From assembly GCA_964106645.2 (NCBI GenBank), contig OZ067038.1: 64,000 bases of DNA; one strand, 5' to 3'. Below, piece after piece: positions 3,620 through 64,000 of the stretch. Under the pieces are notes generated by a model. It was not told the origin of the DNA. It searched no databases and was given only the letters and a program-made list of their open reading frames with translations. The position numbers and the translations under genes are program-made. Every line of letters begins with the position of its first letter. Within the stretch, counting starts at the first letter, position 1. This DNA comes from Podarcis pityusensis (lineage: Eukaryota).

Positions 3620-4925
3620 CAATGGGGGGGGGAAGTACACCCTCTTTGAATTCTGTGGTTTTACATATTAGAACATAATAAAAATCATGTGTTCCTTAGG
3701 TTTTAAAATTAGGTAAATATAACCACAGATGAACAACAACACAGGACATATTACACTGTGTCAAGATTTATTTAACAAAAATAAAACCAAAATGGAGAAG
3801 CCATGTGTGAAAAACTAAGTACACCTTACGATTCAATAGAACCACCTTTAGCAGCAATAACTAGAAGTAATTGTTTTCTGATGACTTTATCAGTCTCTCC
3901 CATTGTGGTGGAGGATTTTTGGCCCACTCTTCTTTACACCATTGCTTCAGTTTGTTGGGTTTGCTGGCATTTGTTTATGCACGGCTCTCTGGTCTGGATT
4001 TTGACTGGATCATTGCAACACCTTGATTCTTTTCTTTTTCAGCCATTCTGTTGTCGATTTGCTGATGTACTTGGGACCATTGTCCTATTGCATGACCCAA
4101 TTTCAGCCAAGCTTCAGCTTTTGGGCAGATGGCCTCGAGTTTGACCCTAGAATACTTCTCTGTACAGAGGAGTTCATAGTCGGACTCAATGACTCCAAGG
4201 TTCCCAGGTCCTGTGGCTGCTGAACAAGCCCAATTCATCACCGCTTCGCCACCCTGCTTGACAGTTGGTACGAGGTGTTTGTGCTGATATGCTGTGCTTG
4301 GTTTTGGCCAAATGTGGTGCTGTGCATTTTGGCCAAACAACTCCACTTTGGTCTTGTCTGTCCAAAGGACATTGTTCCAGAAGTCTTGTAGTTTGTTCAG
4401 ATGCAACTTTGTAAACTCTGCTGCCATGTTCTTGTTAGAGAGAAGAGACTTTCTCCTGACAGCCCTTCCAAACAACCAACTGTATACTGGTTCAGTCTTT
4501 TTCTAGTTGTACTGTCATGAGCTGTAAGACTGATGCTAAATGAGGCCTGTAGATCCTGTGATGGAACTCTTGGGTTTCTTGCAATTCTTCTGAAAATTGC
4601 ACTGTCTGACCTTGGGGTGAATTTGCTGGGACGTCCACTCCTGGGAAGATTGGGAACTGTCTTGAATGTTTTCCGCTTTTGAATAATCTTTCTTACTGTA
4701 GAATAATGCACGTTAAATTGGGTAGAGATGGTCTTATAACCCTTCCCAGTTTCATGGGCAGCAACAATTGCTTCTCTAAGAGCATTGCTGAAGTCTTTCC
4801 TCCTTGGCATTGTGTTAAAACACATCTGAATGCGCCATCAAACTGCTAAAAATTTGACTTTTGTAGAGATAGTCACAATTGCTGATGATCAATTAACCAA
4901 CACCTGTCTGCTACTTAGCCTCATA
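3620..4925 (-). mobile_element. Tc1-like (Sleeping Beauty-type IR/DR) DNA transposon, degenerate
   Basis: Transposase from ATG 4810: MPRRKDFSNALREAIVAAHETGKGYKTIS...LPRSGRPSKFTPR (paired-like HTH, GRPS linker), frameshifted into VLWTDKTKVELFG...PTVKQGG..NWACSAATGPG. The left TIR has a repeated AAGTACACC motif (~3633 and ~3817). No right TIR seen. Confidence 0.9.
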
Positions 4926-18707: not shown

Positions 18708-21700
18708 TTAATTAGCTTGTGGTGCTCCTTGGCAACGCTTTTGGGTAAGGACAGCGACCAGGAACCTAGCCACTTTCAGGGTCGTATGGGTATCCTTATC
18801 CTGCAAGATTTGGGCAAGGTGGAATTTTGGTGGAGTACCCTCTAGTTTCTGTATGATTGATCCCAACAAATTTGCCCGTGGCACCTTGAATAAGGGGCAA
18901 GTGAACATAATGTGCTGAAGCGACTCCGGCGTCTCCTTATCACATTCGCACATGGCGGAGGCTTGGCCCTTTGAGAATCTATGTCTCAGGACATTGGAGG
19001 GAAAAACATTAAACCTCGCTTTGGTGAAGGCCAGCCTATGGGCAACAGTCGAAAGGGAGGAGAGGTATGATGGAACGCAGTAAGTTAAAGTGATACCAAT
19101 GTTCTGGGGCGAACAAACACCTCCCCCCAGCATATAATTTCGCTGTAAATCGATGTCATCCAGTCTTTGGCGGATCAGTCTTTGAGCAGTGATTTGATCT
19201 AGTTTTAGGGAATCTAAGGGAGAGATTCCATAGCTCAGGAGTTTGGCATGAATTCTACTGGTCCAAAGGCTGGAGAATTCATCTCGCCATAAGCATTGGG
19301 CAAGGTAATGGTCTGGTAATCTATGCCACAATGATAACCAATAGTTGAAGACTTGCTTCCACAGGCAAGTTTCTAAGGATGCGATCTTCAATTCTAGTCG
19401 CATGGCTGCGTTGCTTACGCACAGGGGGAGCATTAGGAGCCGACGTAGGAATTGGTTTTGCAGAGTCTCAAGAGGAGCAAGGTCTGTCATCACGGCCCAG
19501 AGCGGGGCAGCATAAGCAAGCACAGGAACCACTTTTGCCTTGAACACCTTTAGGGCCGAGGGAACATGCAAAGCTCCATCCGAAAAGAAAAATCGGAGGA
19601 GCGCATATGACAGAGTTTTGGCCTTGTTAAGTAGGTGTTGAATATGTGCTTTCCACCCCAAATTGTATTGAAAAATAACTCCTAGGTATTGAAATTTTAG
19701 GACTTGCTCTATTTTTGCTCCACCAAGCTTCCATTCGTATAATCTCCGACTTCTGGCGAAAATCAGAATCTTAGATTTAGCATGATTGATGGTTAATTGG
19801 TTGAGTTGACAATACGTGGCAAAGATCTTCAGAGCTCTGGTTAGTCCAACACGTGTATAAGATAGAATTACCGCGTCGTCCGCATATAAAAGGAGTGGAC
19901 AGCGGTAATCCGCTAGTCTAGGCGCATGTGTACTTGGAGATGAGTTGACTAGGGGTGCTCGCATGTCGCTGATGAATAGATTGAATAGGCAGGGAGCCAA
20001 TATACATCCTTGGCGCACTCCCTTGTTTATTGGTATCGAATTTGTGAGGTCGCCCGCAGGAGTAAGTCTCACTCTGGCAAGGGTACCTTCGTGGAGCTGA
20101 CTTATAAGCCATAAGAGTCTTCTATCGATGCCCTGTTTCGCAAGTTTCTCCCAAAGAATATTTCTAGGAACGCTGTCAAAGGCTGCCTTAAGATCTAAGA
20201 AAGCAGCACACAGGTAGCCCCGGGGAGGGGAGGAGTACTTCCGTGCCAGATGGTAAAGAACTATCGCATGATCAGTTGTAGAGCGTTTAATTCTGAACCC
20301 TGCTTGTTCGTGGCCAATCTGGTTAGTCTCATCTACCCATCGCAATAGTTTTGTCAGCAAAAAGCTGGCATAAATTTTCCCTATGATCGAAAGGAGGCTG
20401 ATGTTACGGTAATTTTCCGGCTCCATTGGAGAACCTTTTTTATGAATTGGTACTATAATGGCCTCCTTCCATATTTTGGGGATGAGACCAGAAGCGTTGA
20501 TTGCGTCGAAGGTTTTGGCCAAGATGCCAGCCCACCATTTTGGGTGTAGTTTGATGGCTTCAGCAGGGATCAGGTCGGGCCCTGGGGCTTTGCCCGATTT
20601 CAGCTGGGCTATTAGCTTGGCTATTTCGTCAGGATCGGTGGGAGGCCAAATAGGTAGGTGGGAAAACAGATGCATCAGATGGTCGGAGGGAGCATCTGCC
20701 TGTGAGAAACATTTCTTCAGGAACAATTCCCATGTCGGTGCAGGGATGACTGCCCTTGGGTATTTCCTCACCCTTCTGTTAATCAGAGACCAGAATTCCC
20801 TGGATCTATGTGATTTTGAAGCAGTAATCAAGGCCTGCCAGCGATTATGTTGCCACTCACGTTTGGCAATTTTCTGTGTGCGTTTGTAAACTTGCTTGGC
20901 TTGTGCATAACTAGCTGGCAGAGTAGATGCATCGGAGGTCTTATATACATTATATATAGCACGAAGGCGCTGTCTTGCTTGTTTGCACTGAGAGTTATAC
21001 CAGGGGGCACCGTAAGTATACTCGTTTCGATTTAATATTTTGGGTGGTAACCTGAAGAAGGACGTAAGATCAGTCGTATGATGGTGGAAGCGTTTCAACA
21101 CTATGCTATGCTCGTCTGAGGCAGAGCCTATGTAGGGATGGGGCCCGAGGATTTCTTTTTGAAAGAATTCCTGATACCTTTGAGCCTGGGTCTCCGACCA
21201 TTTGATTCCTCTTACTTGGAGAGATACGTTGGTTACCATCTGGGTCGCATGTCTATAGGCCTCCGACTGCCAATTCAGGGAAAGCTTGGCTACAAGGGGA
21301 AGATGATCACTAGATTGTACATTCTCGATCTTAAAGGTGGAAATACACTTAAGTAGATCACTGGAGACCAGCAGGTAATCGAGGACGCTGTTTGATTTAA
21401 CACTCAGGTGAGTGAAATCCCCTGGAATATCAGGGAGGCATGTGCGATTTAGGGGGACCAGATTTAAACGGATGGCCATTTGGTAGAGGAATACTCCAGC
21501 CTCATTAACTCGTTGGTCTTTAGAAGTTCTCCTCATGATATGTTCCAGATCATAATTATCAAGGTTTGGGATAACCCACCATTTGGCTTTGGTCAGCGAG
21601 TCCCAATTTGCTGCTGTGCGGGCATTAAAATCGCCACCTATTATGGCCGGGGTGTTAGGAAACTTGACATAGCATGAGAGCAAATGCTCTTCTAGCGAGC

Positions 21701-22091
21701 CCCATTTAGAGCCCAGTTCGGAGGAAGAACCCCCGGGTGGCAAGTAAACATTTGTAACTAGAAGTGAGATCTTTTCCCCCGCAATCAGCCCGGTAAGGGC
21801 GTAAGGAGGCAAGGCCTGTACTAGAGTAAATTTAGAATGTAAGTTGAGGGAGATGCCTATTATTAGGCCCCCTTTAGGGCGGCCTCCTTTCAGGGAGGGG
21901 CAGGCAGGGAGTTCTAGAAGCTCAAAGCCATTTAGATCAATTCTCTCTACTTCCCACGATTCTTGGAACAAGATGATATGAAACAGGTTAATATACTCCA
22001 AGAATTCTGGGTCAAGTTTTTTCCCCCTCCAGCCCGCAATGTTCCAGCTGAGGACTGATAGGGGGGAGTTCCTGTTGTAACCAATTCGCTG
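18708..22091 (-). CDS. LINE ORF2: APE endonuclease + reverse transcriptase + C-terminal CCHC zinc knuckle (no own AUG before the endonuclease)
   Basis: APE motifs SWNIAG, FQESW, YLPP, GDFNAR, LDY, SDHLP. RT motifs QAGFR, FLDLKAAFDSV, GVRQGCILAPCLFNLF, YADD, YLGV. C-terminal CECDKETPESLQHIMFTC. Open from the codon after the ORF1 stop (1127 codons). Confidence 0.93.
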   Translation of the reverse strand, partial: QRIGYNRNSPLSVLSWNIAGWRGKKLDPEFLEYINLFHIILFQESWEVERIDLNGFELLELPACPSLKGGRPKGGLIIGISLNLHSKFTLVQALPPYALTGLIAGEKISLLVTNVYLPPGGSSSELGSKWGSLEEHLLSCYVKFPNTPAIIGGDFNARTAANWDSLTKAKWWVIPNLDNYDLEHIMRRTSKDQRVNEAGVFLYQMAIRLNLVPLNRTCLPDIPGDFTHLSVKSNSVLDYLLVSSDLLKCISTFKIENVQSSDHLPLVAKLSLNWQSEAYRHATQMVTNVSLQVRGIKWSETQAQRYQEFFQKEILGPHPYIGSASDEHSIVLKRFHHHTTDLTSFFRLPPKILNRNEYTYGAPWYNSQCKQARQRLRAIYNVYKTSDASTLPASYAQAKQVYKRTQKIAKREWQHNRWQALITASKSHRSREFWSLINRRVRKYPRAVIPAPTWELFLKKCFSQADAPSDHLMHLFSHLPIWPPTDPDEIAKLIAQLKSGKAPGPDLIPAEAIKLHPKWWAGILAKTFDAINASGLIPKIWKEAIIVPIHKKGSPMEPENYRNISLLSIIGKIYASFLLTKLLRWVDETNQIGHEQAGFRIKRSTTDHAIVLYHLARKYSSPPRGYLCAAFLDLKAAFDSVPRNILWEKLAKQGIDRRLLWLISQLHEGTLARVRLTPAGDLTNSIPINKGVRQGCILAPCLFNLFISDMRAPLVNSSPSTHAPRLADYRCPLLLYADDAVILSYTRVGLTRALKIFATYCQLNQLTINHAKSKILIFARSRRLYEWKLGGAKIEQVLKFQYLGVIFQYNLGWKAHIQHLLNKAKTLSYALLRFFFSDGALHVPSALKVFKAKVVPVLAYAAPLWAVMTDLAPLETLQNQFLRRLLMLPLCVSNAAMRLELKIASLETCLWKQVFNYWLSLWHRLPDHYLAQCLWRDEFSSLWTSRIHAKLLSYGISPLDSLKLDQITAQRLIRQRLDDIDLQRNYMLGGGVCSPQNIGITLTYCVPSYLSSLSTVAHRLAFTKARFNVFPSNVLRHRFSKGQASAMCECDKETPESLQHIMFTCPLFKVPRANLLGSIIQKLEGTPPKFHLAQILQDKDTHTTLKVARFLVAVLTQKRCQGAPQAN

Positions 22092-23891
22092 TCATTTCGG
22101 GGAGGGATGTGAGTCCTTTGGAGGCAAGGCAGACCCCACGAAAAAGTCAGTTATTTTACTTTGCATAGCAGGCACCTGCTGAAGGTACCTAGTCTTGAAG
22201 TTGGTAGTGAGGTATTCTGACTGGGGCGACAAAACGGGTCTCCCGCTGGCTAACCCAAGGGCGGACACTTCAGTGGGAAACTCCACAGGATTTGCTGAGA
22301 CTGCCCCACCGCAAGGTCTAAAGGTCGCCGATGAAACCATTTGGTTTATATGTCCGGTCGGGTCTTCAATCAAATCCGGGCCATTTTTTGATGTAGGTGG
22401 GACACTCCCCTGACCTGATGCTGGCAAAGGTACAGGGGATGTTCGGCGTACTGGTACCGTTTGTATGTCGGGTCTATGCCGCTCAGGGGAGTATGAGGAC
22501 TCCAGTTCCGGCATTGATGGATTAGATGGTAAGGAGTTGTTTTGGTGGAAGGAACTCTGAGTTACACTCCTCAGCGGGGGACTCTTGGAGGGCGAGTCAA
22601 AATTTATCAAGAGTTGGGATGAGGGGCCAACTTGAGAGGCAAAACCTGGGTCTGCCAAGCGTCGGTGGGTTTTGCCCACAAGTGGGGGAGGCATGGGTTT
22701 AGGAGCTGGACTAAGGTATGGAAGACTTCCTGCTTCCTTAAACCACGACTCCGAAAAGCTGGCAGAGTTATCCTGAAAAGTGGGCAGGACTTTTCCATTC
22801 TTCTGGACATGTATGAGCTGATGATTAAGTACTTCTAGTCTATCAATTATTTCTTGTTGTTCTCTCGGTGGAAGGTCGCCAAAGGTGGCTAAAAGCTCTC
22901 TTTCCTCCGGCGGGGTCAGAGAATTACTTGCGCCAGTGGGTTTCTTTAGAGCTCGTGGGGACGTAGGGTGAGTCCAGTTTCGGTGCGGATGGATATCCTC
23001 CAGGAGAGGAGGCTCGATGTCCCGAGGTACTCCCGACCTCTCCGACAGAGTCCACTCCGTACCGTGACCAGCAAGTAGGAGGGGGTGGATCATGCTATCC
23101 ATAAAAACTCTTGTTGGGATGATATCGTACCTTGCCAAGAGTGGTTTCTGCCTGATGATAGCTGAAGGGATCCTTGGAGAGTAAAACGCAAGCATCACTT
23201 TCTGTTGCCCGAGGTGCTGGTTCAAAGGTAATACTGCAATGAGATCGCATTGTGAGATTTCTATGTTTAGGAGATTGCTTAGGTGCTTTTTAACCCCACT
23301 CAGAGTAAGCCACCTTGGTGACCCTGCCCCAATGTTTAGGCAGATTTTCTTAGGTTGCAGGGACAATGCTTGATGTTTCAGTGCAGGATTTGGTTTATAT
23401 TTAGGGATCACACTTCTTTTTTTGGTAGAAGGCAAGGACCTCTGGCACTTCAATTCCCCCGTATCTACAGTTGGTTTAAACTTTGACCAGAAGTTATCCA
23501 TTTTCTGTTCGAGGTTACATAACTGGGAGGCTAGCACATCAATCTTCTTGAATATGCAATTAAGGGTTCTGACCACAAGATGGAGATGTTCATGTTGTTC
23601 TTGTCTTGCGCAGTCCTCAGTTCCAGCGTCCTGCACCACCCTCAATGGGACACTCCCTCTTCCTCCAAGCTTGCCGTCCGCAGTTTTAGTCTGAGGTAAA
23701 AATAATTCCTCTGGTGTTGACATTGTTTCTTGAGACATTAGAGGGTAGAAACGGTTCTGAGTTTTCACCCTATAGCAGAGTTCAATGGGGTCACTCCGTT
23801 TGTCAGACACGGGGGGGTCGATTTTTAATTGTTTGGCTCTTGGGGAGGGCAGAGCCTCGTCACAATCCCTTAGGCGTTTGCCTTGGCCCAT
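22092..23891 (-). CDS. LINE ORF1 protein (599 aa from ATG 23891)
   Basis: Good Kozak context (ACG ATG G), NRFYPL motif, predicted coiled coil LNCIFKKIDVLASQLCNLEQKMD, Pro/Ser-rich C-terminal half, QSKITDFF near the end. The ORF-track start at 23957 is a TTG. Confidence 0.8.
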   Translation of the reverse strand: MGQGKRLRDCDEALPSPRAKQLKIDPPVSDKRSDPIELCYRVKTQNRFYPLMSQETMSTPEELFLPQTKTADGKLGGRGSVPLRVVQDAGTEDCARQEQHEHLHLVVRTLNCIFKKIDVLASQLCNLEQKMDNFWSKFKPTVDTGELKCQRSLPSTKKRSVIPKYKPNPALKHQALSLQPKKICLNIGAGSPRWLTLSGVKKHLSNLLNIEISQCDLIAVLPLNQHLGQQKVMLAFYSPRIPSAIIRQKPLLARYDIIPTRVFMDSMIHPLLLAGHGTEWTLSERSGVPRDIEPPLLEDIHPHRNWTHPTSPRALKKPTGASNSLTPPEERELLATFGDLPPREQQEIIDRLEVLNHQLIHVQKNGKVLPTFQDNSASFSESWFKEAGSLPYLSPAPKPMPPPLVGKTHRRLADPGFASQVGPSSQLLINFDSPSKSPPLRSVTQSSFHQNNSLPSNPSMPELESSYSPERHRPDIQTVPVRRTSPVPLPASGQGSVPPTSKNGPDLIEDPTGHINQMVSSATFRPCGGAVSANPVEFPTEVSALGLASGRPVLSPQSEYLTTNFKTRYLQQVPAMQSKITDFFVGSALPPKDSHPSPK

Positions 23892-25566
23892 CGTTATGAG
23901 TCTTTTAAAATAGCAGTGCTTAAAAGATAATAAAAGGTAGTAGAAATAGAAATACAACTGGATGTGAGCTGGCGGAAAACCAGTAAGTCGAAGGCTGCTT
24001 CCAAGGCTGCCGGAGAATGCAATTATCTGCTCATTAAAGCTGATTTACGATGCAGGCTTTACAGTTATTAGCAATGTGAACTCCTGGCATGGGCTCCAAC
24101 ACCCTGATACAATCTTCAGCAAAAACTTGAAAGGCTGGGAGCCACAGCACAAATTTTAGGGAGGATTCGAGATGAACTCCGGCAAATGCGTCTTACCTCG
24201 TCGCCATCTTCTTTTTTCATCTACGGGAGTCTTTCCCAGTGCATACCTGGAGATGCTAGAGATTGAATATGAGACCTTACACATACAAATCAATTGCTCT
24301 AAAACCCTTCCCTTGTGCTGTAATAGTACAAGAGTAACAAGAAACCTCAGTGAAAGATTCTGCCACTGAACATACCAGACTAGTAACAACGCACACCAAT
24401 GAAAATTACCAAATAGATTTCCTATGGTATCTGCAAAGATCCTGATCTTGCTCTATGCTGTTTCCTGCCGCTGATTTATAGGTGAAGTGGGAATTGTAAT
24501 CTGCATGGTTCGTTTAAGTATGAAACCCAAAGAGTATGTTTAACACACAGTATGACTTGATCTTTTAATGTGGTTTACAGAAAATGTAGTGAGACAGTAT
24601 CCCTGTTTTAACTATTGCTTTTGGAGGATAAGCAGCTAGAATGTTCAGGGAAATAGCAGACTCACTAGACTTGAATCAAAGTTGCTAAATGGTTGACTAC
24701 AACAAAGGGAAAGGCATTTTCTAGCTTGGAACAAGAATGTCACTAAATAATCTATGTACCAGACACAAGTGCCAATTTATCCCCGCGACTGTGGGTGCCT
24801 GGGGCTGTGGGTGCCATGCATGGCCCTGGCACCAAAATTTGTGGGTGCCCAGCCCCTTCATGGGGAATGTTGGGCATCCAGGGCCATAGAGAGTTGGCAC
24901 ATTAGAAGATTAAGTCAGCACAGGGAAATAATTTCTCTTTCAGAAATTAGATGTTTCAAAGATGGAGCATTTGAGATCAGATTCTATCCAGCAAGCAGGA
25001 AATAGCTGAGAATTATATAGTGGCAGAAGAAAGCTTAAATTAATGATCATGAACTGATTGAGATCAGCAAAGTGAAGTTAGCTGAACAGGGACAATGAAC
25101 TTCAAAAGACTTAAACAAACTGAAAAAATGAAGTCTGTGACCATGACCAGAATTACAAAAGCATGGCCTTGACCAGAAAAATGTGTTAAAATCCTTGAGA
25201 ACCTCTTGTTTCCTTTATGACTCGCATTATGTTTGGTTTACCATTTGTTCTTAATTTGTGTTTGAAAGTCATCGTGATGAAGTCCAGTTTTAAGCATGGC
25301 TTTTGAAAAACTGAAACCAGTTGACATACAAAGAGAAAAACATCAGAGTTAGAAAAACTGCCAAACAACTAGTAGCGTATGAAGGTTTGAGTTTGGGTTT
25401 GTAGAAGGTAGGACCACCCCCAATTTAGAGAAGAGTCAAGCATATAAAACAAGGAATACCAGGTGGTAATTTCATAGAGATTAGCTGGCATGTTGCCATT
25501 TCCCCTTGGATTATTTATTTTATTATTCTTTTGTACACCACTGTTTTGCAGCTAACAGTGAGGATA

Positions 25567-28927: not shown

Positions 28928-30288
28928 TGTTATGTACTGAAGTTCTCACCCTGGGCCAGCAGAGGGACACTGTAGATAGTTATGCAAATAAGGGATCGAA
29001 AGTGACGTTCACTGATTGGATAGTTTTAGAAAATTGTTACAGTTACGTTGTACTGGAGCTCTATATAAGCAGGCTGACTGAATCCTTAGAATCATAGAAT
29101 AGAATCATAGAATCATAGAGTTGGAAGAGACCACAAGGTACATCGAGTCCAACACCCTGCCAAGCAGGAAACACCATCAGAGCACTCCTGACATATGGCT
29201 GTCAAGCCTCTGCTTAAAGACCTCCAAAGAAGGAGACTCCACCACACTCCTTGGCAGCAAATTCCACTGTCGAACAGCTCTTACTGTCAGGAAGTTCTTC
29301 CTAATGTTTAGGTGGAATCTTCTTTCTTGTAGTTTGGATCCATTGCTCCGTGTCCGCTTCTCTGGAGCAGCAGAAAACAACCTTTCTCCCTCCTCTATGT
29401 GACATCCTTTTATATATTTGAACATGGCTATCATATCACCCCTTAACCTCCTCTTCTCCAGGCTAAACATGCCCAGCTCCCTTAGCCGTTCCTCATAAGG
29501 CATCGTTTCCAGGCCTTTGACCATTTTGGTTGCCCTCCTCTGGACACGTTCCAGTTTGTCAGTGTCCTTCTTGAACTGTGGTGCCCAGAACTGGACACAG
29601 TACTCCAGGTGAGGTCTGACCAGAGTAGAATACAGTGGCACTATTACTTCCCTTGATCTAGATGCTATACTCCTATTGATGCAGCCCAGAATTGCATTGG
29701 CTTTTTTAGCTGCCGCGTCACACTGTTGGCTCATGTCAAGTTTGTGGTCAACCAAGACTCCTAGATCCTTTTCACATGTACTGCTCTCAAGCCAGGTGTC
29801 CCCCATCTTGTATTTGTGCCTCTCATTTTTTTTGCCCAAGTGCAATACTTTACATTTCTCCCTGTTAAAATTCATCTTGTTTGTTTTGGCCCAGTTCTCT
29901 AATCTGTCAAGGTCGTTTTGAAGTGTGATCCTGTCCTCTGGGGTGTTAGCCACCCCTCCCAATTTGGTGTCATCTGCAAATTTGATCAGGATGCCCTTGA
30001 GTCCATCATCCAAGTCGTTGATAAAGATGTTGAATAAGACCGGGCCCAAGACAGAACCCTGTGGCACCCCACTAGTCACTCTTCTCCAGGATGAAGAGGA
30101 ACCATTGATGAGCACCCTTTGGGTTCGGTCAGTCAGCCAGTTACAAATCCACTGAGTGGTAGCATAGTCAAGACTGCATTTTACCAGCTTCTTTACAAGA
30201 ATTGTTCAGTTCTGTCCTGGCCTGTGAATAAACAAGAGCTGTTTGAAGAATCGCTGTGTTGTCTGATATGTTCACTCACAACTTAACA
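28928..30288 (+). mobile_element. Solo LTR split by a CR1 insertion
   Basis: TGTTATG...TTAACA termini; octamer ATGCAAAT 28982, TGACGT 29003, ATTGG 29015, TATATAA 29062, AATAAA 30227. No matching TSD found. Confidence 0.65.
29087..30202 (-). mobile_element. Young 5'-truncated CR1 LINE with intact RT C-terminal ORF (29177-30115)
   Basis: [20 protein letters not shown]...FADDTKLG...[15 protein letters not shown], 312 aa uninterrupted; (ATTCTATG)n tail. Confidence 0.96.
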
Positions 30289-52439: not shown

Positions 52440-53230
52440 CATTTTCGAATGGCGGACTCCGAGCGAGCAGTCCCTCTTGAGGGAGCTCTCTTTATTCTCT
52501 CTTTTACAGAGGGGGAGAGAAGGTGGCCAGGCGGCGGCTGAGGGGTCTTCCTTTCTGTTCTCTTGACATTCCCTGGCGGGCTTCGGTTCCTGAGGGGGAG
52601 AGCGGAGGCTTCCCTGGGCGCGGGGCTTTCGTGGGGGCGCCCCCTGGGCGGGAGGCCCGCTGCCCCACAGCCGAGCCCTTTCTGAGGGGACTTCGCCGGG
52701 CCTTGGGCGCCGGGCTCCTCCCTCCCTCCCTCCCTCCCGCGCTCGGCCCCGCCCCCTGCGGAGAGCCCTCGGCCCGCCCCCGCCCGCCTCCCGTGCGCGC
52801 ATGCGCGGGCTGCCCCAGCCGCCGCCGCCTTCTCCTCACGCCGGAGGCGCCTGCGAGGAGAGGGAGGGAGGCGGGCAGGCAGCGCCATGGAGCTGGTCGG
52901 GGCGCAGCAGCAGCCGCAGCAGGCGGCGGGCCTGGCCGGGAGGAAGAGGCAGCCCAACCGCGAGAGGCCCGCCGCGGCCGAGGACGACGCCCTCAACCAG
53001 ATCGCCCGCGAGGTGAGCGGCGGCGGGGGGGGCGGGGGCGCCTCTCGCCTCTTTCCGCTCTTCTTCCTCCTCCTCCTCCCCGGGCGGGGGGGCGGGGCTG
53101 TCACCTCGGCCCCTCCCCTTTGACGTGGGAGCTGTCAGGTGCCGCCCCCCCCTTTCTCCCCTCCCTCCCATCAACTTCCGGGAGGCCGTTGGGGGCGGGG
53201 CGGGGGTCCAGCCCATTTGCGACCCCGGCA
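52440..53230 (+). promoter_or_regulatory. LRRFIP1: CpG-island promoter of LRRFIP1
   Basis: GC/CpG-rich; GC boxes (CCCCGCCCC) and NRF1-like GCGCGCATGCGC at ~52795 upstream of the ATG. Confidence 0.85.
52887..53012 (+). CDS. LRRFIP1: LRRFIP1 coding exon 1 (42 codons, phase-0 donor); rest of gene lies beyond the window
   Basis: GCC ATG G Kozak; ...GRKRQPNRERPAAAEDDALNQIARE|GTGAGC matches the recalled LRRFIP1 N-terminus GRKRLPNRERLTAEDDALNQIARE (LRRFIP2 has EDEALSNIARE). The next exon (AEARLAAKR...) was not found in the window. Confidence 0.92.
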
Positions 53231-59919: not shown

Positions 59920-61075
59920 TTATTACTTATACCCCACCTATCTGGCCGGGTCTCCCCAGCCACTCTGGGCGGCTCCCAACAGAATATTAGTAAAGGTAAA
60001 GGGACCCCTGACCATTAGGTCCAGTCCGACCTAGGTGGCCGACTCTGGGGTTGCAGCGCTCATCTCGCTTTATTGGCCGAGGGAGCCGGCGTACAGCTTC
60101 CGGGTCATGTGGCCAGCATGACTAAGCCGCTTCTGGTGAACCAGAGCAGCACACGGAAATGCCATTTACCTTCCCGCCGGAGTGGTACCTATTTATCTAC
60201 TTGCACTTAAACCACAGAGCCTAGAACTTGCCAATCAGAAGGTCGGTGGTTTGAATCCCCGCGACGGGGTGAGCTGCCGTTGCTCGGTCCGAGCTCCTGC
60301 CAACAGAATATTAAAAACACGATAAAACATGAAACATTCCCTAAGTAGGGCTGCTTTCAGATGTCTTCTAAAAGTCAGATAGTTGTTTATTTCCTTGACA
60401 TTTGATTGGAGGGCATTCCACAGGGCAGGCGCTACTACCGAGAAGGCCCTCTGCCTGGTTCCCTGTAACCTCATTTCTTGCAGTGAGGGAACTACCAGAA
60501 GACCCTCGGAGCTGGACCTCAGTGTCTGGGCTCAATGATGGGGGTGGAGATGTTCCTTCAAGTATACTGGGCCAAGGCCATTTAGGGCTTTAAAGGTCAG
60601 CACCAACACTTTGAATTATGCTTGGAAACGTACTGGGAGCCAATGTAGGTCTTTCAGGACCGGTGTTATATGGTCTTGGCGGCCACTCCCAGTCAAGCTG
60701 CCGCATTCTGGATTAGTTGTAGTTTCCTGGTCACCTTCAAAGGTAGTCCCACGTAGAGCGCATTGCAGTAGTTCAAGCGGGAGATAACTAGAGCATGCAC
60801 CACTCTGGCGAGACAGTCTGCGGGCAGGGAGGGTCTCAGCCTGCGTACCAGATGGAGCTGGTAGACAGCTGCCCTGAACACAGAATTGACCTGTGCCTCC
60901 ATGGACAATTGTGAGTCCAAAATGACTCCCAGGCTATGCACCTGGTCCTTCAGAGGCACAGTTACCCCATTCAGGACCAGGGAGTCCTCCACACCTACCT
61001 GTCCCATCCCCCCAAAACAGTACTTCTGTCTTGTCAGGATTCAACCTCAATCTGTTAGCCACCATCCAATCTGTT
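59878..61075 (-). mobile_element. L2 LINE 3' fragment with (TTA)n tail, interrupted by a SINE
   Basis: VHALVISRLNYCNALYVGLPLKVTRKLQLIQNAAA and RAFSVVAPALWNAL...FRRHLKAAL motifs. Confidence 0.88.
59990..60299. mobile_element. Sauria SINE with inverted 5' part
   Basis: 3' half on - strand (59990-~60207), 5' half on + strand (~60208-60302), flanked by duplicated CCAACAGAATATTA (59976-59989 and 60300-60313). Confidence 0.85.
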
Positions 61076-62438
61076 AGCTGCGATATGTAGACTTGACCTT
61101 ACTGTTTCAGCATTCTGTACTTAAAAGCTTGGGCTTTGCATCCTTCTGCAGTAAGGATTATGAGTCTCTTGTTCAACCACTCTGTGCCAGAGTGTGCCAC
61201 TCTGAAAATGTATTCTTAGCTACTGTCCTCAGGTCCTGTCTGAACATCTTTGTTATACACAATTAACCTTGTCTTTCATGCTCTCTTTGCTTTATGCAGA
61301 CATCTGGCCATGTCTGGGGGGCATGCAACAGCTCTTTTTTGATATGACTTGTATGATGTCCAATGTTATACTAAAGTGGCAGTTTTTTGTATTATACTTG
61401 GCTGATTAAAGCTGTGCTGTACCCCAAGCGGCATGCAACAAATACATTACATTATAGGTGAATGCCGTGTTTAGGAAGATTAGTTTTGGAGTGTAAGATG
61501 ATACATTTAACACCTGTCCAGAGGTTCAGTTTCAACAGGAACTGTTTTTGCTCCACAAATTTCATCTGTTTCATAATGTGAATTGTCTAACTTAAAGTTT
61601 TTGCCCTCAATTCCACAAAACTATTCCTAGAGTGTCAGAAAGAAAGAAAGTAAGAAAGAAAGAGTGCTTGTTTCTGCCAGAGGTAGAGCAGCAGCCTGAC
61701 AAGCACAGTATATAATCTGTGCTAGATGGACATGGTAACAGAATCTTAAAATAGCTCTCTGAAATAGCAGCTGCTGTCTGTTTTCTCTTAAACTTCTTTT
61801 ATGAGAATGGTGGCTACCGGCAACAGGGCATTAAAGAGAATTTACCTAAAAGATAATGCTTAAGTCTTCAGTCCTTTTTATCACAAATGCTAAAAACTGG
61901 GTCAGAGAGAGAATGAATACCGTTGGCATTCTGACTTGGGCCACTCATAGTTGTTGCTTCATGTGAAACCGAAATGGACTAAAGAAGTCCCTCTGGCATG
62001 AATATCTGGCTTTGGTAATGGCATAATCGGACATAGACAGATACACCCAGATTTGTTTCTGGGCCACTTGATTATGATGCTTTCATTCATTCATTCATTT
62101 TCCTAAAACGTATTGTGTGTGTAAAAGTAACCCTAATTCGGATGCATTTCCCACTCAAATGTTCTCGCTTAGGATGCTGATTGAGATATTTTGACAGGCC
62201 AGCTCTCAATAACTTTTCTTGCTTCTCCTACTGAAATACCGGCAACAGTTTCAATAAAGATACTGGTGCTGTACACTATAGCTATTGGGATGTAAACCAG
62301 AAAAAGATGTATTGGGTTTCTTCCTTTTGCTAAAGAGGAATTTAAGTGCTTTGTATACATATAAGGATAATTTTATTTTAAAACTTTCCTATTTCAAGTT
62401 CTCCACCATTTGAAGAGGACTTTCAAACATTGGGGGGA

Positions 62439-62558
62439 ATAATAATAATAATAATAATAATAATTTTATTATTTATACCCCTCCCATCTGGCTGGGTTTC
62501 CCCAGCCACTGTGGGCTGCTCCCAACCAAATATTAAAAACACAATACAGCATTAAACA
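62439..62558 (-). mobile_element. L2 3'-terminal fragment
   Basis: (AAT)n + TTTATACCCCTCCCATCTGGCTGGGTTTCCCCAGCCACT, same as 59878-59990. Confidence 0.8.
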
Positions 62559-62861
62559 GACTTCAGCACAGCTAGAAATATCAGACTCTGAAATTCCTTT
62601 TAAAAATGTAGTTTCCTTATGATACCCTGACATAATGTTTGGAGTTCCAGATTAATTTTTGCATTCTTAGTATTTCATGTGCTTTACTGATAATCCAATG
62701 TTTGTGTGCATTGGGCCATAGTATAGCCTTTGAACCTTGTTGAGGTGAGACATTCATTCCCAGAAATACTGAACAAGTTACCAGAAGCTATTAGAAGTTA
62801 CTGGAAGTTACCAGAAGCTGCTGAAGTACTGGTTTGTTTACTGCAGATACAAGGTCAACAC

Positions 62862-63878
62862 TAGGGCTGGGCGATATCTGGTTTTCAACATCATGATATA
62901 TCACCAGCTAAACATCGCAAATATACCAATATATCACAGTGTCTGAAAAACTGAACTATATATGGTGGGCATGAAGATTCTGCGTGCGGGTGGTAAAAGG
63001 AGCAGCCATGAACATCCGGGAGAAGGAGCAGGCAGTCCTGGATGGGTGGGGGGTGGAGGCAGGGGCTTTGCGTCCCCAATTACTGCCCAAGGTGGGGCAG
63101 GTGCATGCCAGGCAACTGCAGCATCTCAGAGGGGTAGCGCCACCACCTCTTTGAAGGGGTGATCCAGCAGGGGTGTGTGCTCAGTGCGTCTTTTCATGCA
63201 GGGAAGTGCTCTCGCAAGTTCTTCTGCCACTTGCCCTCCCCCCCACCCCCCAAAAAGATGGGGTTTGCCGAGATAGAGACGCTGTCCTGACATCTTCTCA
63301 CAGTCACACAGAGGCTCCAGTCATGTGGGACTTGCCTGTTCGCTGCTCACCTGCCTGCCCGTTAAGTGCCAGGCGCTTCCAGTGCCGCCACCAGCCATGA
63401 ATGTGAGGAGAGTGGCCAGCATCTCCGCCCAGCTGGAGGAAGCCACGGGCACTAGGGCTGCCAGCGCAGCATGGGGGCTTTCCAGTCCGGGTTGGAGGCA
63501 GGTGAGGGTGGGGCACAGAGAGTGCTGTTCAACTTCTGCACTCGCCCAGCCCTTGCCACAGGAGTCAGGCAGGGATCTCTGCAGGGGGGTGGCTGGTTCG
63601 CCCCCCCCCATTGCGCGCCATGGGCAACAGCCCCCCTAGGGCATACAGGAGAAGGAGCAAGCAGTCTTGGATGTTTCTTGGGCTGAGATAAATCGCAGCG
63701 AAGTAGCTAGAGCAGGGAGAGGAACTGCGCACAGGGACTGGACTGCTCAAATTGCTGGCAGTTATACTGCCCCCTGGTGTTTTGAACGATATATTGCAAG
63801 GTCAAATTTAATGACCTTTAATTTAATGTAGACTTCATGCTGGGAATGAATGATATAGCGATAAATCACATAGACCTA
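62862..63878. mobile_element. hAT (Ac-like) non-autonomous element carrying host-gene cargo
   Basis: TAGGGCTGGGCGATAT... / ...ATAAATCACATAGACCTA termini, GATAT-rich subterminal repeats, 8-bp TSD GTCAACAC at 62854-62861 and 63879-63886. Confidence 0.85.
63397..63501 (+). pseudogene. KCNIP4: Captured fragment resembling KCNIP4 (KChIP4) coding exon 1
   Basis: GCC ATG...[18 protein letters not shown] versus recalled KCNIP4 N-terminus [20 protein letters not shown]; followed by donor-like GCAG|GTGAGG; lies inside the hAT element. Confidence 0.75.
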
Positions 63879-64000
63879 GTCAACACCGTGAGAACTGTTC
63901 CCACACATGCACAGCTTCTAGACTGAACTGAGAGATTGTTTAGTCTGAACTCAACTCTTGAACTGTAAGGATGTGATCAGGAGAGGGGAGGCCTTGCAGC

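Follow-up and report, generated by a model that had tools for sequence, protein, structure and literature searches.

The element of 1,017 bp which occupies positions 62862 to 63878 (plus strand) of the 64-kb stretch of Podarcis pityusensis DNA analyzed in this work (64,000 nucleotides in all, hereafter called the window) is probably an old non-autonomous hAT transposon in intron 1 of LRRFIP1, with internal filler DNA derived from a KCNIP4-like locus and now decaying as a pseudo-exon. This kind of capture has already been catalogued in animals, and the LRRFIP1 element adds one lizard case. It represents a single reptile Pack-TIR with unusually complete comparators, namely an empty site, a sibling without the filler, and a candidate parental copy, and the locus could show how a hAT element gained a promoter and first-exon fragment, either by gap filling in place or before transposition. 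For comparison between genomes, Logan contigs from four public runs (designated X1, X3, X4, and X15) were placed on positions 61000-64000 at a likeness of at least 80%; these contigs contain holes, and absence of a sequence from them proves nothing. The window sequence itself contains no N.

The limits of the element were read directly between two perfect copies of an 8 bp target site duplication, GTCAACAC, located at 62854-62861 on the left and at 63879-63886 on the right, the latter copy being seen in contigs as well as in the window (neither copy is assigned a strand). The 5' end of the element is TAGGGCTGGGCGATATC (TAGGGC) and the 3' end is ...ATCACATAGACCTA (GACCTA). Insertion of hAT elements prefers targets of the form nTnnnnAn, and the duplication, which reads G-T-C-A-A-C-A-C, has a T at position 2 and an A at position 7 and conforms to this preference. 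The terminal inverted repeats of hAT elements start with YARNG; the 5' end TAGGG fits this motif, while the reverse complement of the 3' end, TAGGT, fails at the fifth base, and the inverted repeat between the two ends comprises TAGG-C only (TAGGTC versus TAGGGC). Both boundaries and the duplication are confirmed by a paralogous empty site: in a contig of X1 (depth 22.2), found also in X4, position 62820 is joined to 63879 through 34 letters which align to 62821-62853 and are followed by a single copy of GTCAACAC. This contig shows the unoccupied site in a paralogous, diverged version of the flanking DNA. The original prediction of an element of about 1 kb with TAGGG..CCTA-type ends and an 8 bp duplication was therefore correct in all of these features, each of which is present in the sequence, and the empty site backs the limits. 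An intact duplication means that a unit with these ends has moved once, and shows only that. No transposase was detected in the element (Pfam blank), nor any hAT transposase among the large ORFs of the window. Two smaller units were considered and rejected as mobile elements: an inner unit at 62862-63554 has no duplication at 63555, and the empty site confirms the outer limits; a nested MITE of 102 bp at 63453-63554 (TAGGGCTG...CAGCCCTT) has no flanking duplication and no raised depth, and the paralogue contig described below also reads through its left end.

The host gene was identified from an ORF on the plus strand at 52887 which starts MELVGAQQQPQQAAGLAGRKRQPNRERPAAAEDDALNQIARE and is followed by a donor GT at 53013. 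In a large-library protein search two proteins matched this exon at residues 1-37, with 86% and 81% identity, the former being isoform X6 of the Anolis sagrei leucine-rich repeat flightless-interacting protein 1 (LRRFIP1; XP_060637543.2), which carries the Pfam LRRFIP domain (9e-63). The Anolis protein continues ...IARE|AEARLAAKRAAR (longer stretch: AEARLAAKRAARAEAREIR) exactly at the donor of the window, and on the basis of this search 52887-53012 (plus strand; 42 codons, 126 nt, phase 0) was assigned as the coding part of LRRFIP1 exon 1. The exon 2 motifs AEARLAAKRAA/EAREIR are absent from all six frames of the window, which places the element in intron 1, 9.85 kb past exon 1. The location in LRRFIP1 intron 1 on the strand of the gene, as originally proposed, thus holds, as does the shared phase, exon 1 (126 nt) and the element's pseudo-exon (105 nt) each ending in phase 0. 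For the 42-aa exon itself Pfam was blank, a literature search on DDALNQIARE gave no match, and a word-index search was blank, the exon being outside the length range of that search. In human, KCNIP4 and LRRFIP1 presumably lie on different chromosomes.

The backbone of the element is formed by two arms. The left arm (62862-63012, plus strand; recognized by motif scan and GC content) and the right arm (63674-63878, plus strand; ending ...GACCTA) carry the subterminal motifs GATAT/ATATC and ATCGC/GCGAT at 62871-62931 and at 63692-63858, and none of these motifs is found in 62936-63691. Internal to the arms are two direct repeats of 32 nt on the plus strand, a left copy (DR-L) at 63013-63044 and a right copy (DR-R) at 63642-63673, which are 88% identical; the right copy was found by repeat comparison and occurs also in the sibling contig described below. 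Contig depth showed that the 5' terminus and subterminal region (62862-62948, plus strand, beginning TAGGGCTGGGCGATATC) is common to an abundant non-autonomous family. The summed depth over 62818-62918 is 46,560, versus ~29.6 in single-copy flank. The similarity of 210 contigs in X1, 196 in X3, and 200 in X4 breaks off precisely in front of 62862, and the flanks of the contigs which end at this position are unrelated (agreement 0.33-0.35). Many contig pieces span 62859/62-62948 with ~87% identity. Hundreds of family copies thus have the first ~90 nt of the element as their terminus, and all of them end at 62862. The right arm is of low copy number (2-3 contigs, with depths of 39-51 and 32.6). 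Among the loose ends listed there is no large set behind 63878, and the abundant family is without this 3' terminus. The element thus has one terminus which is multicopy and another which is not.

A relative of the element without its core was identified in a contig of X1 (depth 19.7) and also in X3. This sibling contig follows the left arm up to 62914, passes into the direct-repeat unit 63649-63675, continues with the 25 letters GTGCAGGTGGGTGGTGGGGGAGATG, enters 63639-63675 for a second time, and then goes on from 63682. The direct-repeat units are 25 nt apart in the sibling, as opposed to 597 nt in the element, and the 597 bp core is absent. The sibling is one contig with a junction rebuilt from joint tables (62914 to 63649 and 63675 to 63639), and as such is moderately firm.

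Between the two direct repeats lies the filler, a GC-rich and essentially single-copy stretch of 597 bp (63045-63641, plus strand) delimited by composition and contig depth. Its GC content is 0.63, versus 0.42 in the arms, and it is CpG-depleted, with an observed/expected ratio of 0.30, which suggests a long-term methylated and silent sequence. Multiple TIR-flanked copies of the interior had been expected, and this expectation failed: at a likeness of at least 80% the interior is single-copy and only the first ~90 nt of the element are multicopy. In X1 the depth over 63121-63221 and 63323-63406 is 22 and 24, about what the orthologous contig contributes by itself (20.9), and the same depth of about one contig was found over both intervals in X3 and X4; owing to the holes in the Logan contigs a second full copy could have been missed.

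Part of the filler has one paralogue elsewhere in the genome. A single contig (depth 23.6 in X1 and 5.8 in X4) matches the filler over a 5'UTR-like part at approximately 63227-63302 (plus strand) and over 63407 to ~63490, and contains no backbone. With respect to the element this contig has a joint from 63302 to 63407, a 5-nt deletion at 63241, and insertions of GAGCT after 63443 and of G after 63445, the latter two amounting to six extra in-frame bases with which it reads ...QLEEASSAGTRAAS..., i.e., EEASSAG. A paralogue is detectable at a likeness of at least 80% for only ~160 of the 597 bases of the filler. As judged from its sequence, the contig is a candidate parental copy of the filler located outside any transposon, and the suggestion that part of the interior would have a genomic counterpart reaching past the peptide into 5'UTR-like DNA is borne out by this one contig with its EEASSAG reading. 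A further component of the filler lies at 63523-63554 (minus strand), where the first 32 nt of the element recur in inverted and degenerate form, with 22 matches out of 32, including an exact run of 12 nt, TCGCCCAGCCCT; out of 1,000 dinucleotide-preserving shuffles not one scored as high. With this inverted terminus in it, the filler is probably a mosaic, assembled through at least two template switches. The transposon ends, the filler-less relative, and the candidate parental copy together fit the definition of a Pack-TIR, and the proposed hAT-type insertion with a non-transposon interior (Pack-type) is upheld by the duplication, the empty site, and the sibling contig. Two minor resemblances were observed within the filler. 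The 11-mer CACTAGGGCTG at 63450-63460, which sits within the stretch matched by the paralogue, is a repeat of the left junction including three flank bases, and at its start the filler is similar to the 25-nt G-rich spacer in the sibling contig.

The pseudo-exon is an ATG-initiated ORF of 35 codons (105 nt, phase 0) at 63397-63501 on the plus strand, followed by a consensus-like splice donor, CAG|GTGAGG (63502-63507, plus strand; GT at 63502-63503). The distance from ATG to donor and the phase were as predicted, with the ATG at 63397-63399 and the GT at 63502. The likeness to KCNIP4 exon 1 is a putative one: 15 of the first 16 residues of what we take to be the N-terminus of human KCNIP4 isoform 1 match the ORF, and the KCNIP4 N-terminus presumably carries EEASSTG, at which point human exon 1 is assumed to end. 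On the strength of this presumed N-terminus the putative origin of the filler lies in KCNIP4, at the 5'UTR and the first coding exon. The EEASSAG of the paralogue is nearer to the presumed EEASSTG, and the paralogue has two extra codons (Ser-Ser) which are absent from the element but belong to the presumed KCNIP4 protein as well. The match to the paralogue skips 63303-63406, including the ATG, and stops near 63490, short of the GT at 63502. No GT follows directly after the EEASSAG of the paralogue, where human exon 1 presumably ends, which means that either the lizard exon is different or the paralogue is not a functional exon. The CAG|GTGAGG of the element lies between the paralogue-matched piece and the inverted terminus, and may be fortuitous. 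A word-index protein search with the 104-aa ORF (against proteins of 57-182 aa) returned eight word-sharing candidates, none with E<=10; by local calibration a match of 15 out of 16 residues is worth 16.5 bits, or an E of ~500-900 in a library of 1.84 billion proteins. Comparison of the ORF with PDB gave only a spurious match, Pfam was blank, a literature search on the window peptide MNVRRV gave no match, and an exact-product look-up found no record of either the 80-aa ORF on the sense strand or the 96-aa ORF on the antisense strand. An Rfam search gave only an insignificant match to RT-1 (E 0.98) outside the element, and the neighboring high-copy repeats contain no tRNA-like sequence.

Three species, and probably a fourth, share the insertion at this site. 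Both the left and the right junction are bridged by contigs of X1, X3, and X4 (organisms A, B, and C), and X15 (organism G) holds 62901-63020 and 63850-63998. Occupation of the same site in X1, X3, and X4 indicates that the insertion is old and predates the divergence of at least three species, among which sequence divergence in this region is ~1-3%. The peptide differs between them: the X1 allele is without 3 nt at 63405, with loss of an Arg codon, and reads MNVRV, and close relatives show a Gly/Val difference at 63491 (G>V) in addition to other peptide differences.

The course of events which we consider probable would start with a non-autonomous hAT element, with the arms at ~62862-63044 and 63642-63878 as its backbone, inserting in sense orientation into LRRFIP1 intron 1 before at least three of the sampled species diverged. 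The ~600 bp of foreign DNA between the 32-nt direct repeats would have been gained by template switching while a double-strand break within the transposon was being repaired; the tandem direct-repeat units may have been a fragile site for such a break. In the course of such repair the filler at ~63227-63302 and 63407-63490 would have been copied from a locus which is still present elsewhere in the genome, and the inverted terminal sequence within the filler would represent an apparent second template switch. What remains today would be the neutral decay of a captured ATG, exon, and donor, which is two codons shorter than the paralogue, has lost a further codon in one allele, and is depleted of CpGs.

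Precedent for such a course of events is available from 370 Pack-TIRs described in 100 animal genomes, of which 208 are hAT and only 1.4% are multicopy (Tan et al., 2021; Nat Commun 12:4280, PMC8277862). For single-copy Pack-TIRs the explanation given was that a transposon already in place had suffered an internal break, which was then repaired from an ectopic template with microhomology, and most animal Pack-TIRs were put down to gap filling with a bias toward nearby parental copies (PMC8277862). As to whether the filler of the LRRFIP1 element was gained in place, or at least never amplified since, or instead was acquired before the last jump, we lean slightly toward the former. The in-place version is somewhat disfavored by the combination of the reported bias toward nearby parents and the presumed location of KCNIP4 and LRRFIP1 on different human chromosomes.

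The alternative which survives best, although we regard it as unlikely, is that of a mobile Pack-hAT family, in which the promoter and exon 1 of KCNIP4 were captured elsewhere and copies with this cargo were then transposed, one of them into LRRFIP1 intron 1, as originally proposed. The intact 8 bp duplication is in favor of it, since it records the transposition of a unit bearing these ends, and a multicopy Pack-hAT with a 5'UTR fragment is known in the frog (Tan et al., 2021; PMC8277862). It is opposed by the interior depth of about one contig over 63121-63221 and 63323-63406 in three DNA runs, by the lack of backbone in the sole second contig found for the exon region, by the absence of a further copy of the element from the 64-kb window, and by the rarity of multicopy cases among animal Pack-TIRs (PMC8277862).

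Considerably less probable is a scenario with no gene capture, according to which the interior either is native to an uncommon hAT-N subfamily or was pieced together from transposon fragments, and the likeness to KCNIP4 is mistaken or coincidental. The failure of the protein, PDB, and literature searches to return a match to the KCNIP4 sequence fits this scenario, as do the transposon-derived piece within the filler (the inverted terminus at 63523-63554), the repetition of the left junction by the 11-mer at 63450-63460, and the similarity of the start of the filler to the spacer of the sibling. Against these stand an ATG-anchored N-terminal match over 16 residues which, provided that the presumed KCNIP4 sequence is correct, far exceeds what chance would give, the six in-frame bases of the paralogue which shift its reading toward that presumed sequence, and a sibling without the core.

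Capture from a KCNIP4-like locus followed by decay remains our preferred reading, and in that case the function of the pseudo-exon is probably nil. The opposite proposal, that the captured ATG, exon, and donor act as an alternative promoter and first exon which give LRRFIP1 a chimeric KCNIP4-LRRFIP1 N-terminus, is very improbable: although the element is on the strand of LRRFIP1 with both exons in phase 0, the donor CAG|GTGAGG is near consensus, no in-frame ATG lies between the upstream stop and 63397, and several species have kept the insertion, none of the public runs containing the stretch is on record as RNA, X15 (from another species and guessed to be RNA) has a depth of 0 over 63323-63827 and of 3-7 on the neighboring intron, the peptide is not conserved (codon loss in X1, G>V at 63491, two codons fewer than in the paralogue), the CpG ratio suggests methylated and silent DNA, and the putative 5'UTR contains four upstream ATGs. 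KCNIP4 promoters are active in neurons, and we give very little credence to a use of the captured promoter, exon, and donor in some tissue, e.g., neurons, across several lizards; were it true, LRRFIP1 would have gained a novel N-terminus and be expressed in a new domain as well.

In its general features the LRRFIP1 element resembles the animal Pack-hATs, being non-autonomous and single-copy, with intact ends, a duplication, and internal filler presumably derived from a host gene (PMC8277862). The putative type of fragment, 5'UTR and first exon, is like that of the frog element hAT-N8_XT, which carries a 5'UTR of CAPSL (PMC8277862). It differs from the cases of Tan et al. in its lizard host, the words "Lizard" and "Anolis" being absent from the main text of PMC8277862, in the pre-existing 32-nt direct repeat of the backbone which brackets the filler, and in the presence within the filler of an inverted copy of its own terminus; in addition, its parental gene is a putative one. 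A literature search on hAT MITEs of lizards returned only arachnid mites. The likeness extends to the Pack-MULE and Pack-TYPE elements of plants (Gisby and Catoni, 2022; PMC8903248), which are TIR transposons with gene fragments and from which chimeric transcripts with adjacent genes are in principle possible; the plant Pack-TYPE elements are, however, often multicopy, mobilized together with their cargo, and of the Mutator or CACTA type, whereas the LRRFIP1 element is an unamplified hAT. Fragments of comparable composition, with a promoter or 5'UTR, a first exon, and a donor, which could drive chimeric transcripts when placed in sense orientation within a gene, are found in the NUBPL Helitron as well as in the LRRFIP1 element. 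This Helitron of vesper bats, which took up the promoter and first exon of NUBPL, is said to have been described by Thomas and colleagues in 2014, reportedly with many copies and documented transcripts. The NUBPL Helitron is a rolling-circle element, amplified and transcribed, whereas the element in LRRFIP1 is a single-copy element of the cut-and-paste type.

Comparison of the window with run X1, which has the same organism code, showed an uneven distribution of differences. Eight positions and two indels differ within 63012-63601, compared with one position only in ~1,750 nt of flank. For four of the differences within 63012-63601, X1, X3, and X4 agree with each other against the window.

Alignment of the Logan contigs from public DNA runs to the window showed that eight positions and two indels (63012-63601) separate the window from the contig of run X1, which carries the same organism code, inside the GC-rich filler of the hAT element; over approximately 1,750 nt of flank the same two sequences differ at only one position. 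At 63012, 63324, 63426, and 63491 the base of the window stands alone against concordant bases in X1 and two further runs, X3 and X4. This clustering of mismatches within the core could reflect gene conversion, a divergent haplotype, or a polishing error in the GC-rich sequence.

The DNA into which the hAT element was inserted (62717-62861 and 63879-64000) is itself repetitive, being represented in the Logan contigs by at least two diverged paralogous contigs, one of which is an empty site, i.e., it lacks the element and has a single copy of the 8-bp target sequence. A tandem repeat with a 10-nt period, composed of four to five AAGTTACCAG-like units (62775-62824), lies immediately 5' of the insertion. 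Two very high-copy repeats were detected nearby, at 61007-61068 (summed contig depth about 0.5 million) and at 62414-62558 (about 1.4 million). The latter looks SINE-like, since A-rich loose ends come after it in the contigs; ARAGORN identified no tRNA in either repeat, and Rfam returned at 62429-62533 only an insignificant RT-1 match.

In P0003, a 206-aa Logan contig protein, LRRFIP1 exon 1 continues directly into the intron (IARE-VRQAG...), and the same read-through is seen in the window ORF at 52887-53120 (+). P0003 is not an LRRFIP1 isoform but an ORF-caller artefact of the protein collection. A second GC-rich island (1000-2650; GC 0.59), located 50 kb upstream of exon 1 and containing (CA)n at ~1620-1655 and (TA)n at ~2190-2226, could represent an additional promoter or a first exon without coding sequence; no coding exon was recognised within it.

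Further transposable-element sequences on the minus strand of the window include a near-full-length LINE (18708-23957), in which a 621-aa ORF1 lies upstream of a 1,097-aa ORF2 that contains both an endonuclease and a reverse-transcriptase domain (Pfam 6e-34), an additional reverse-transcriptase fragment (29177-30115), and an N-terminal fragment of a Tc1/mariner transposase (4397-4825) with a Sleeping Beauty-type HTH (Pfam 1.7e-14).
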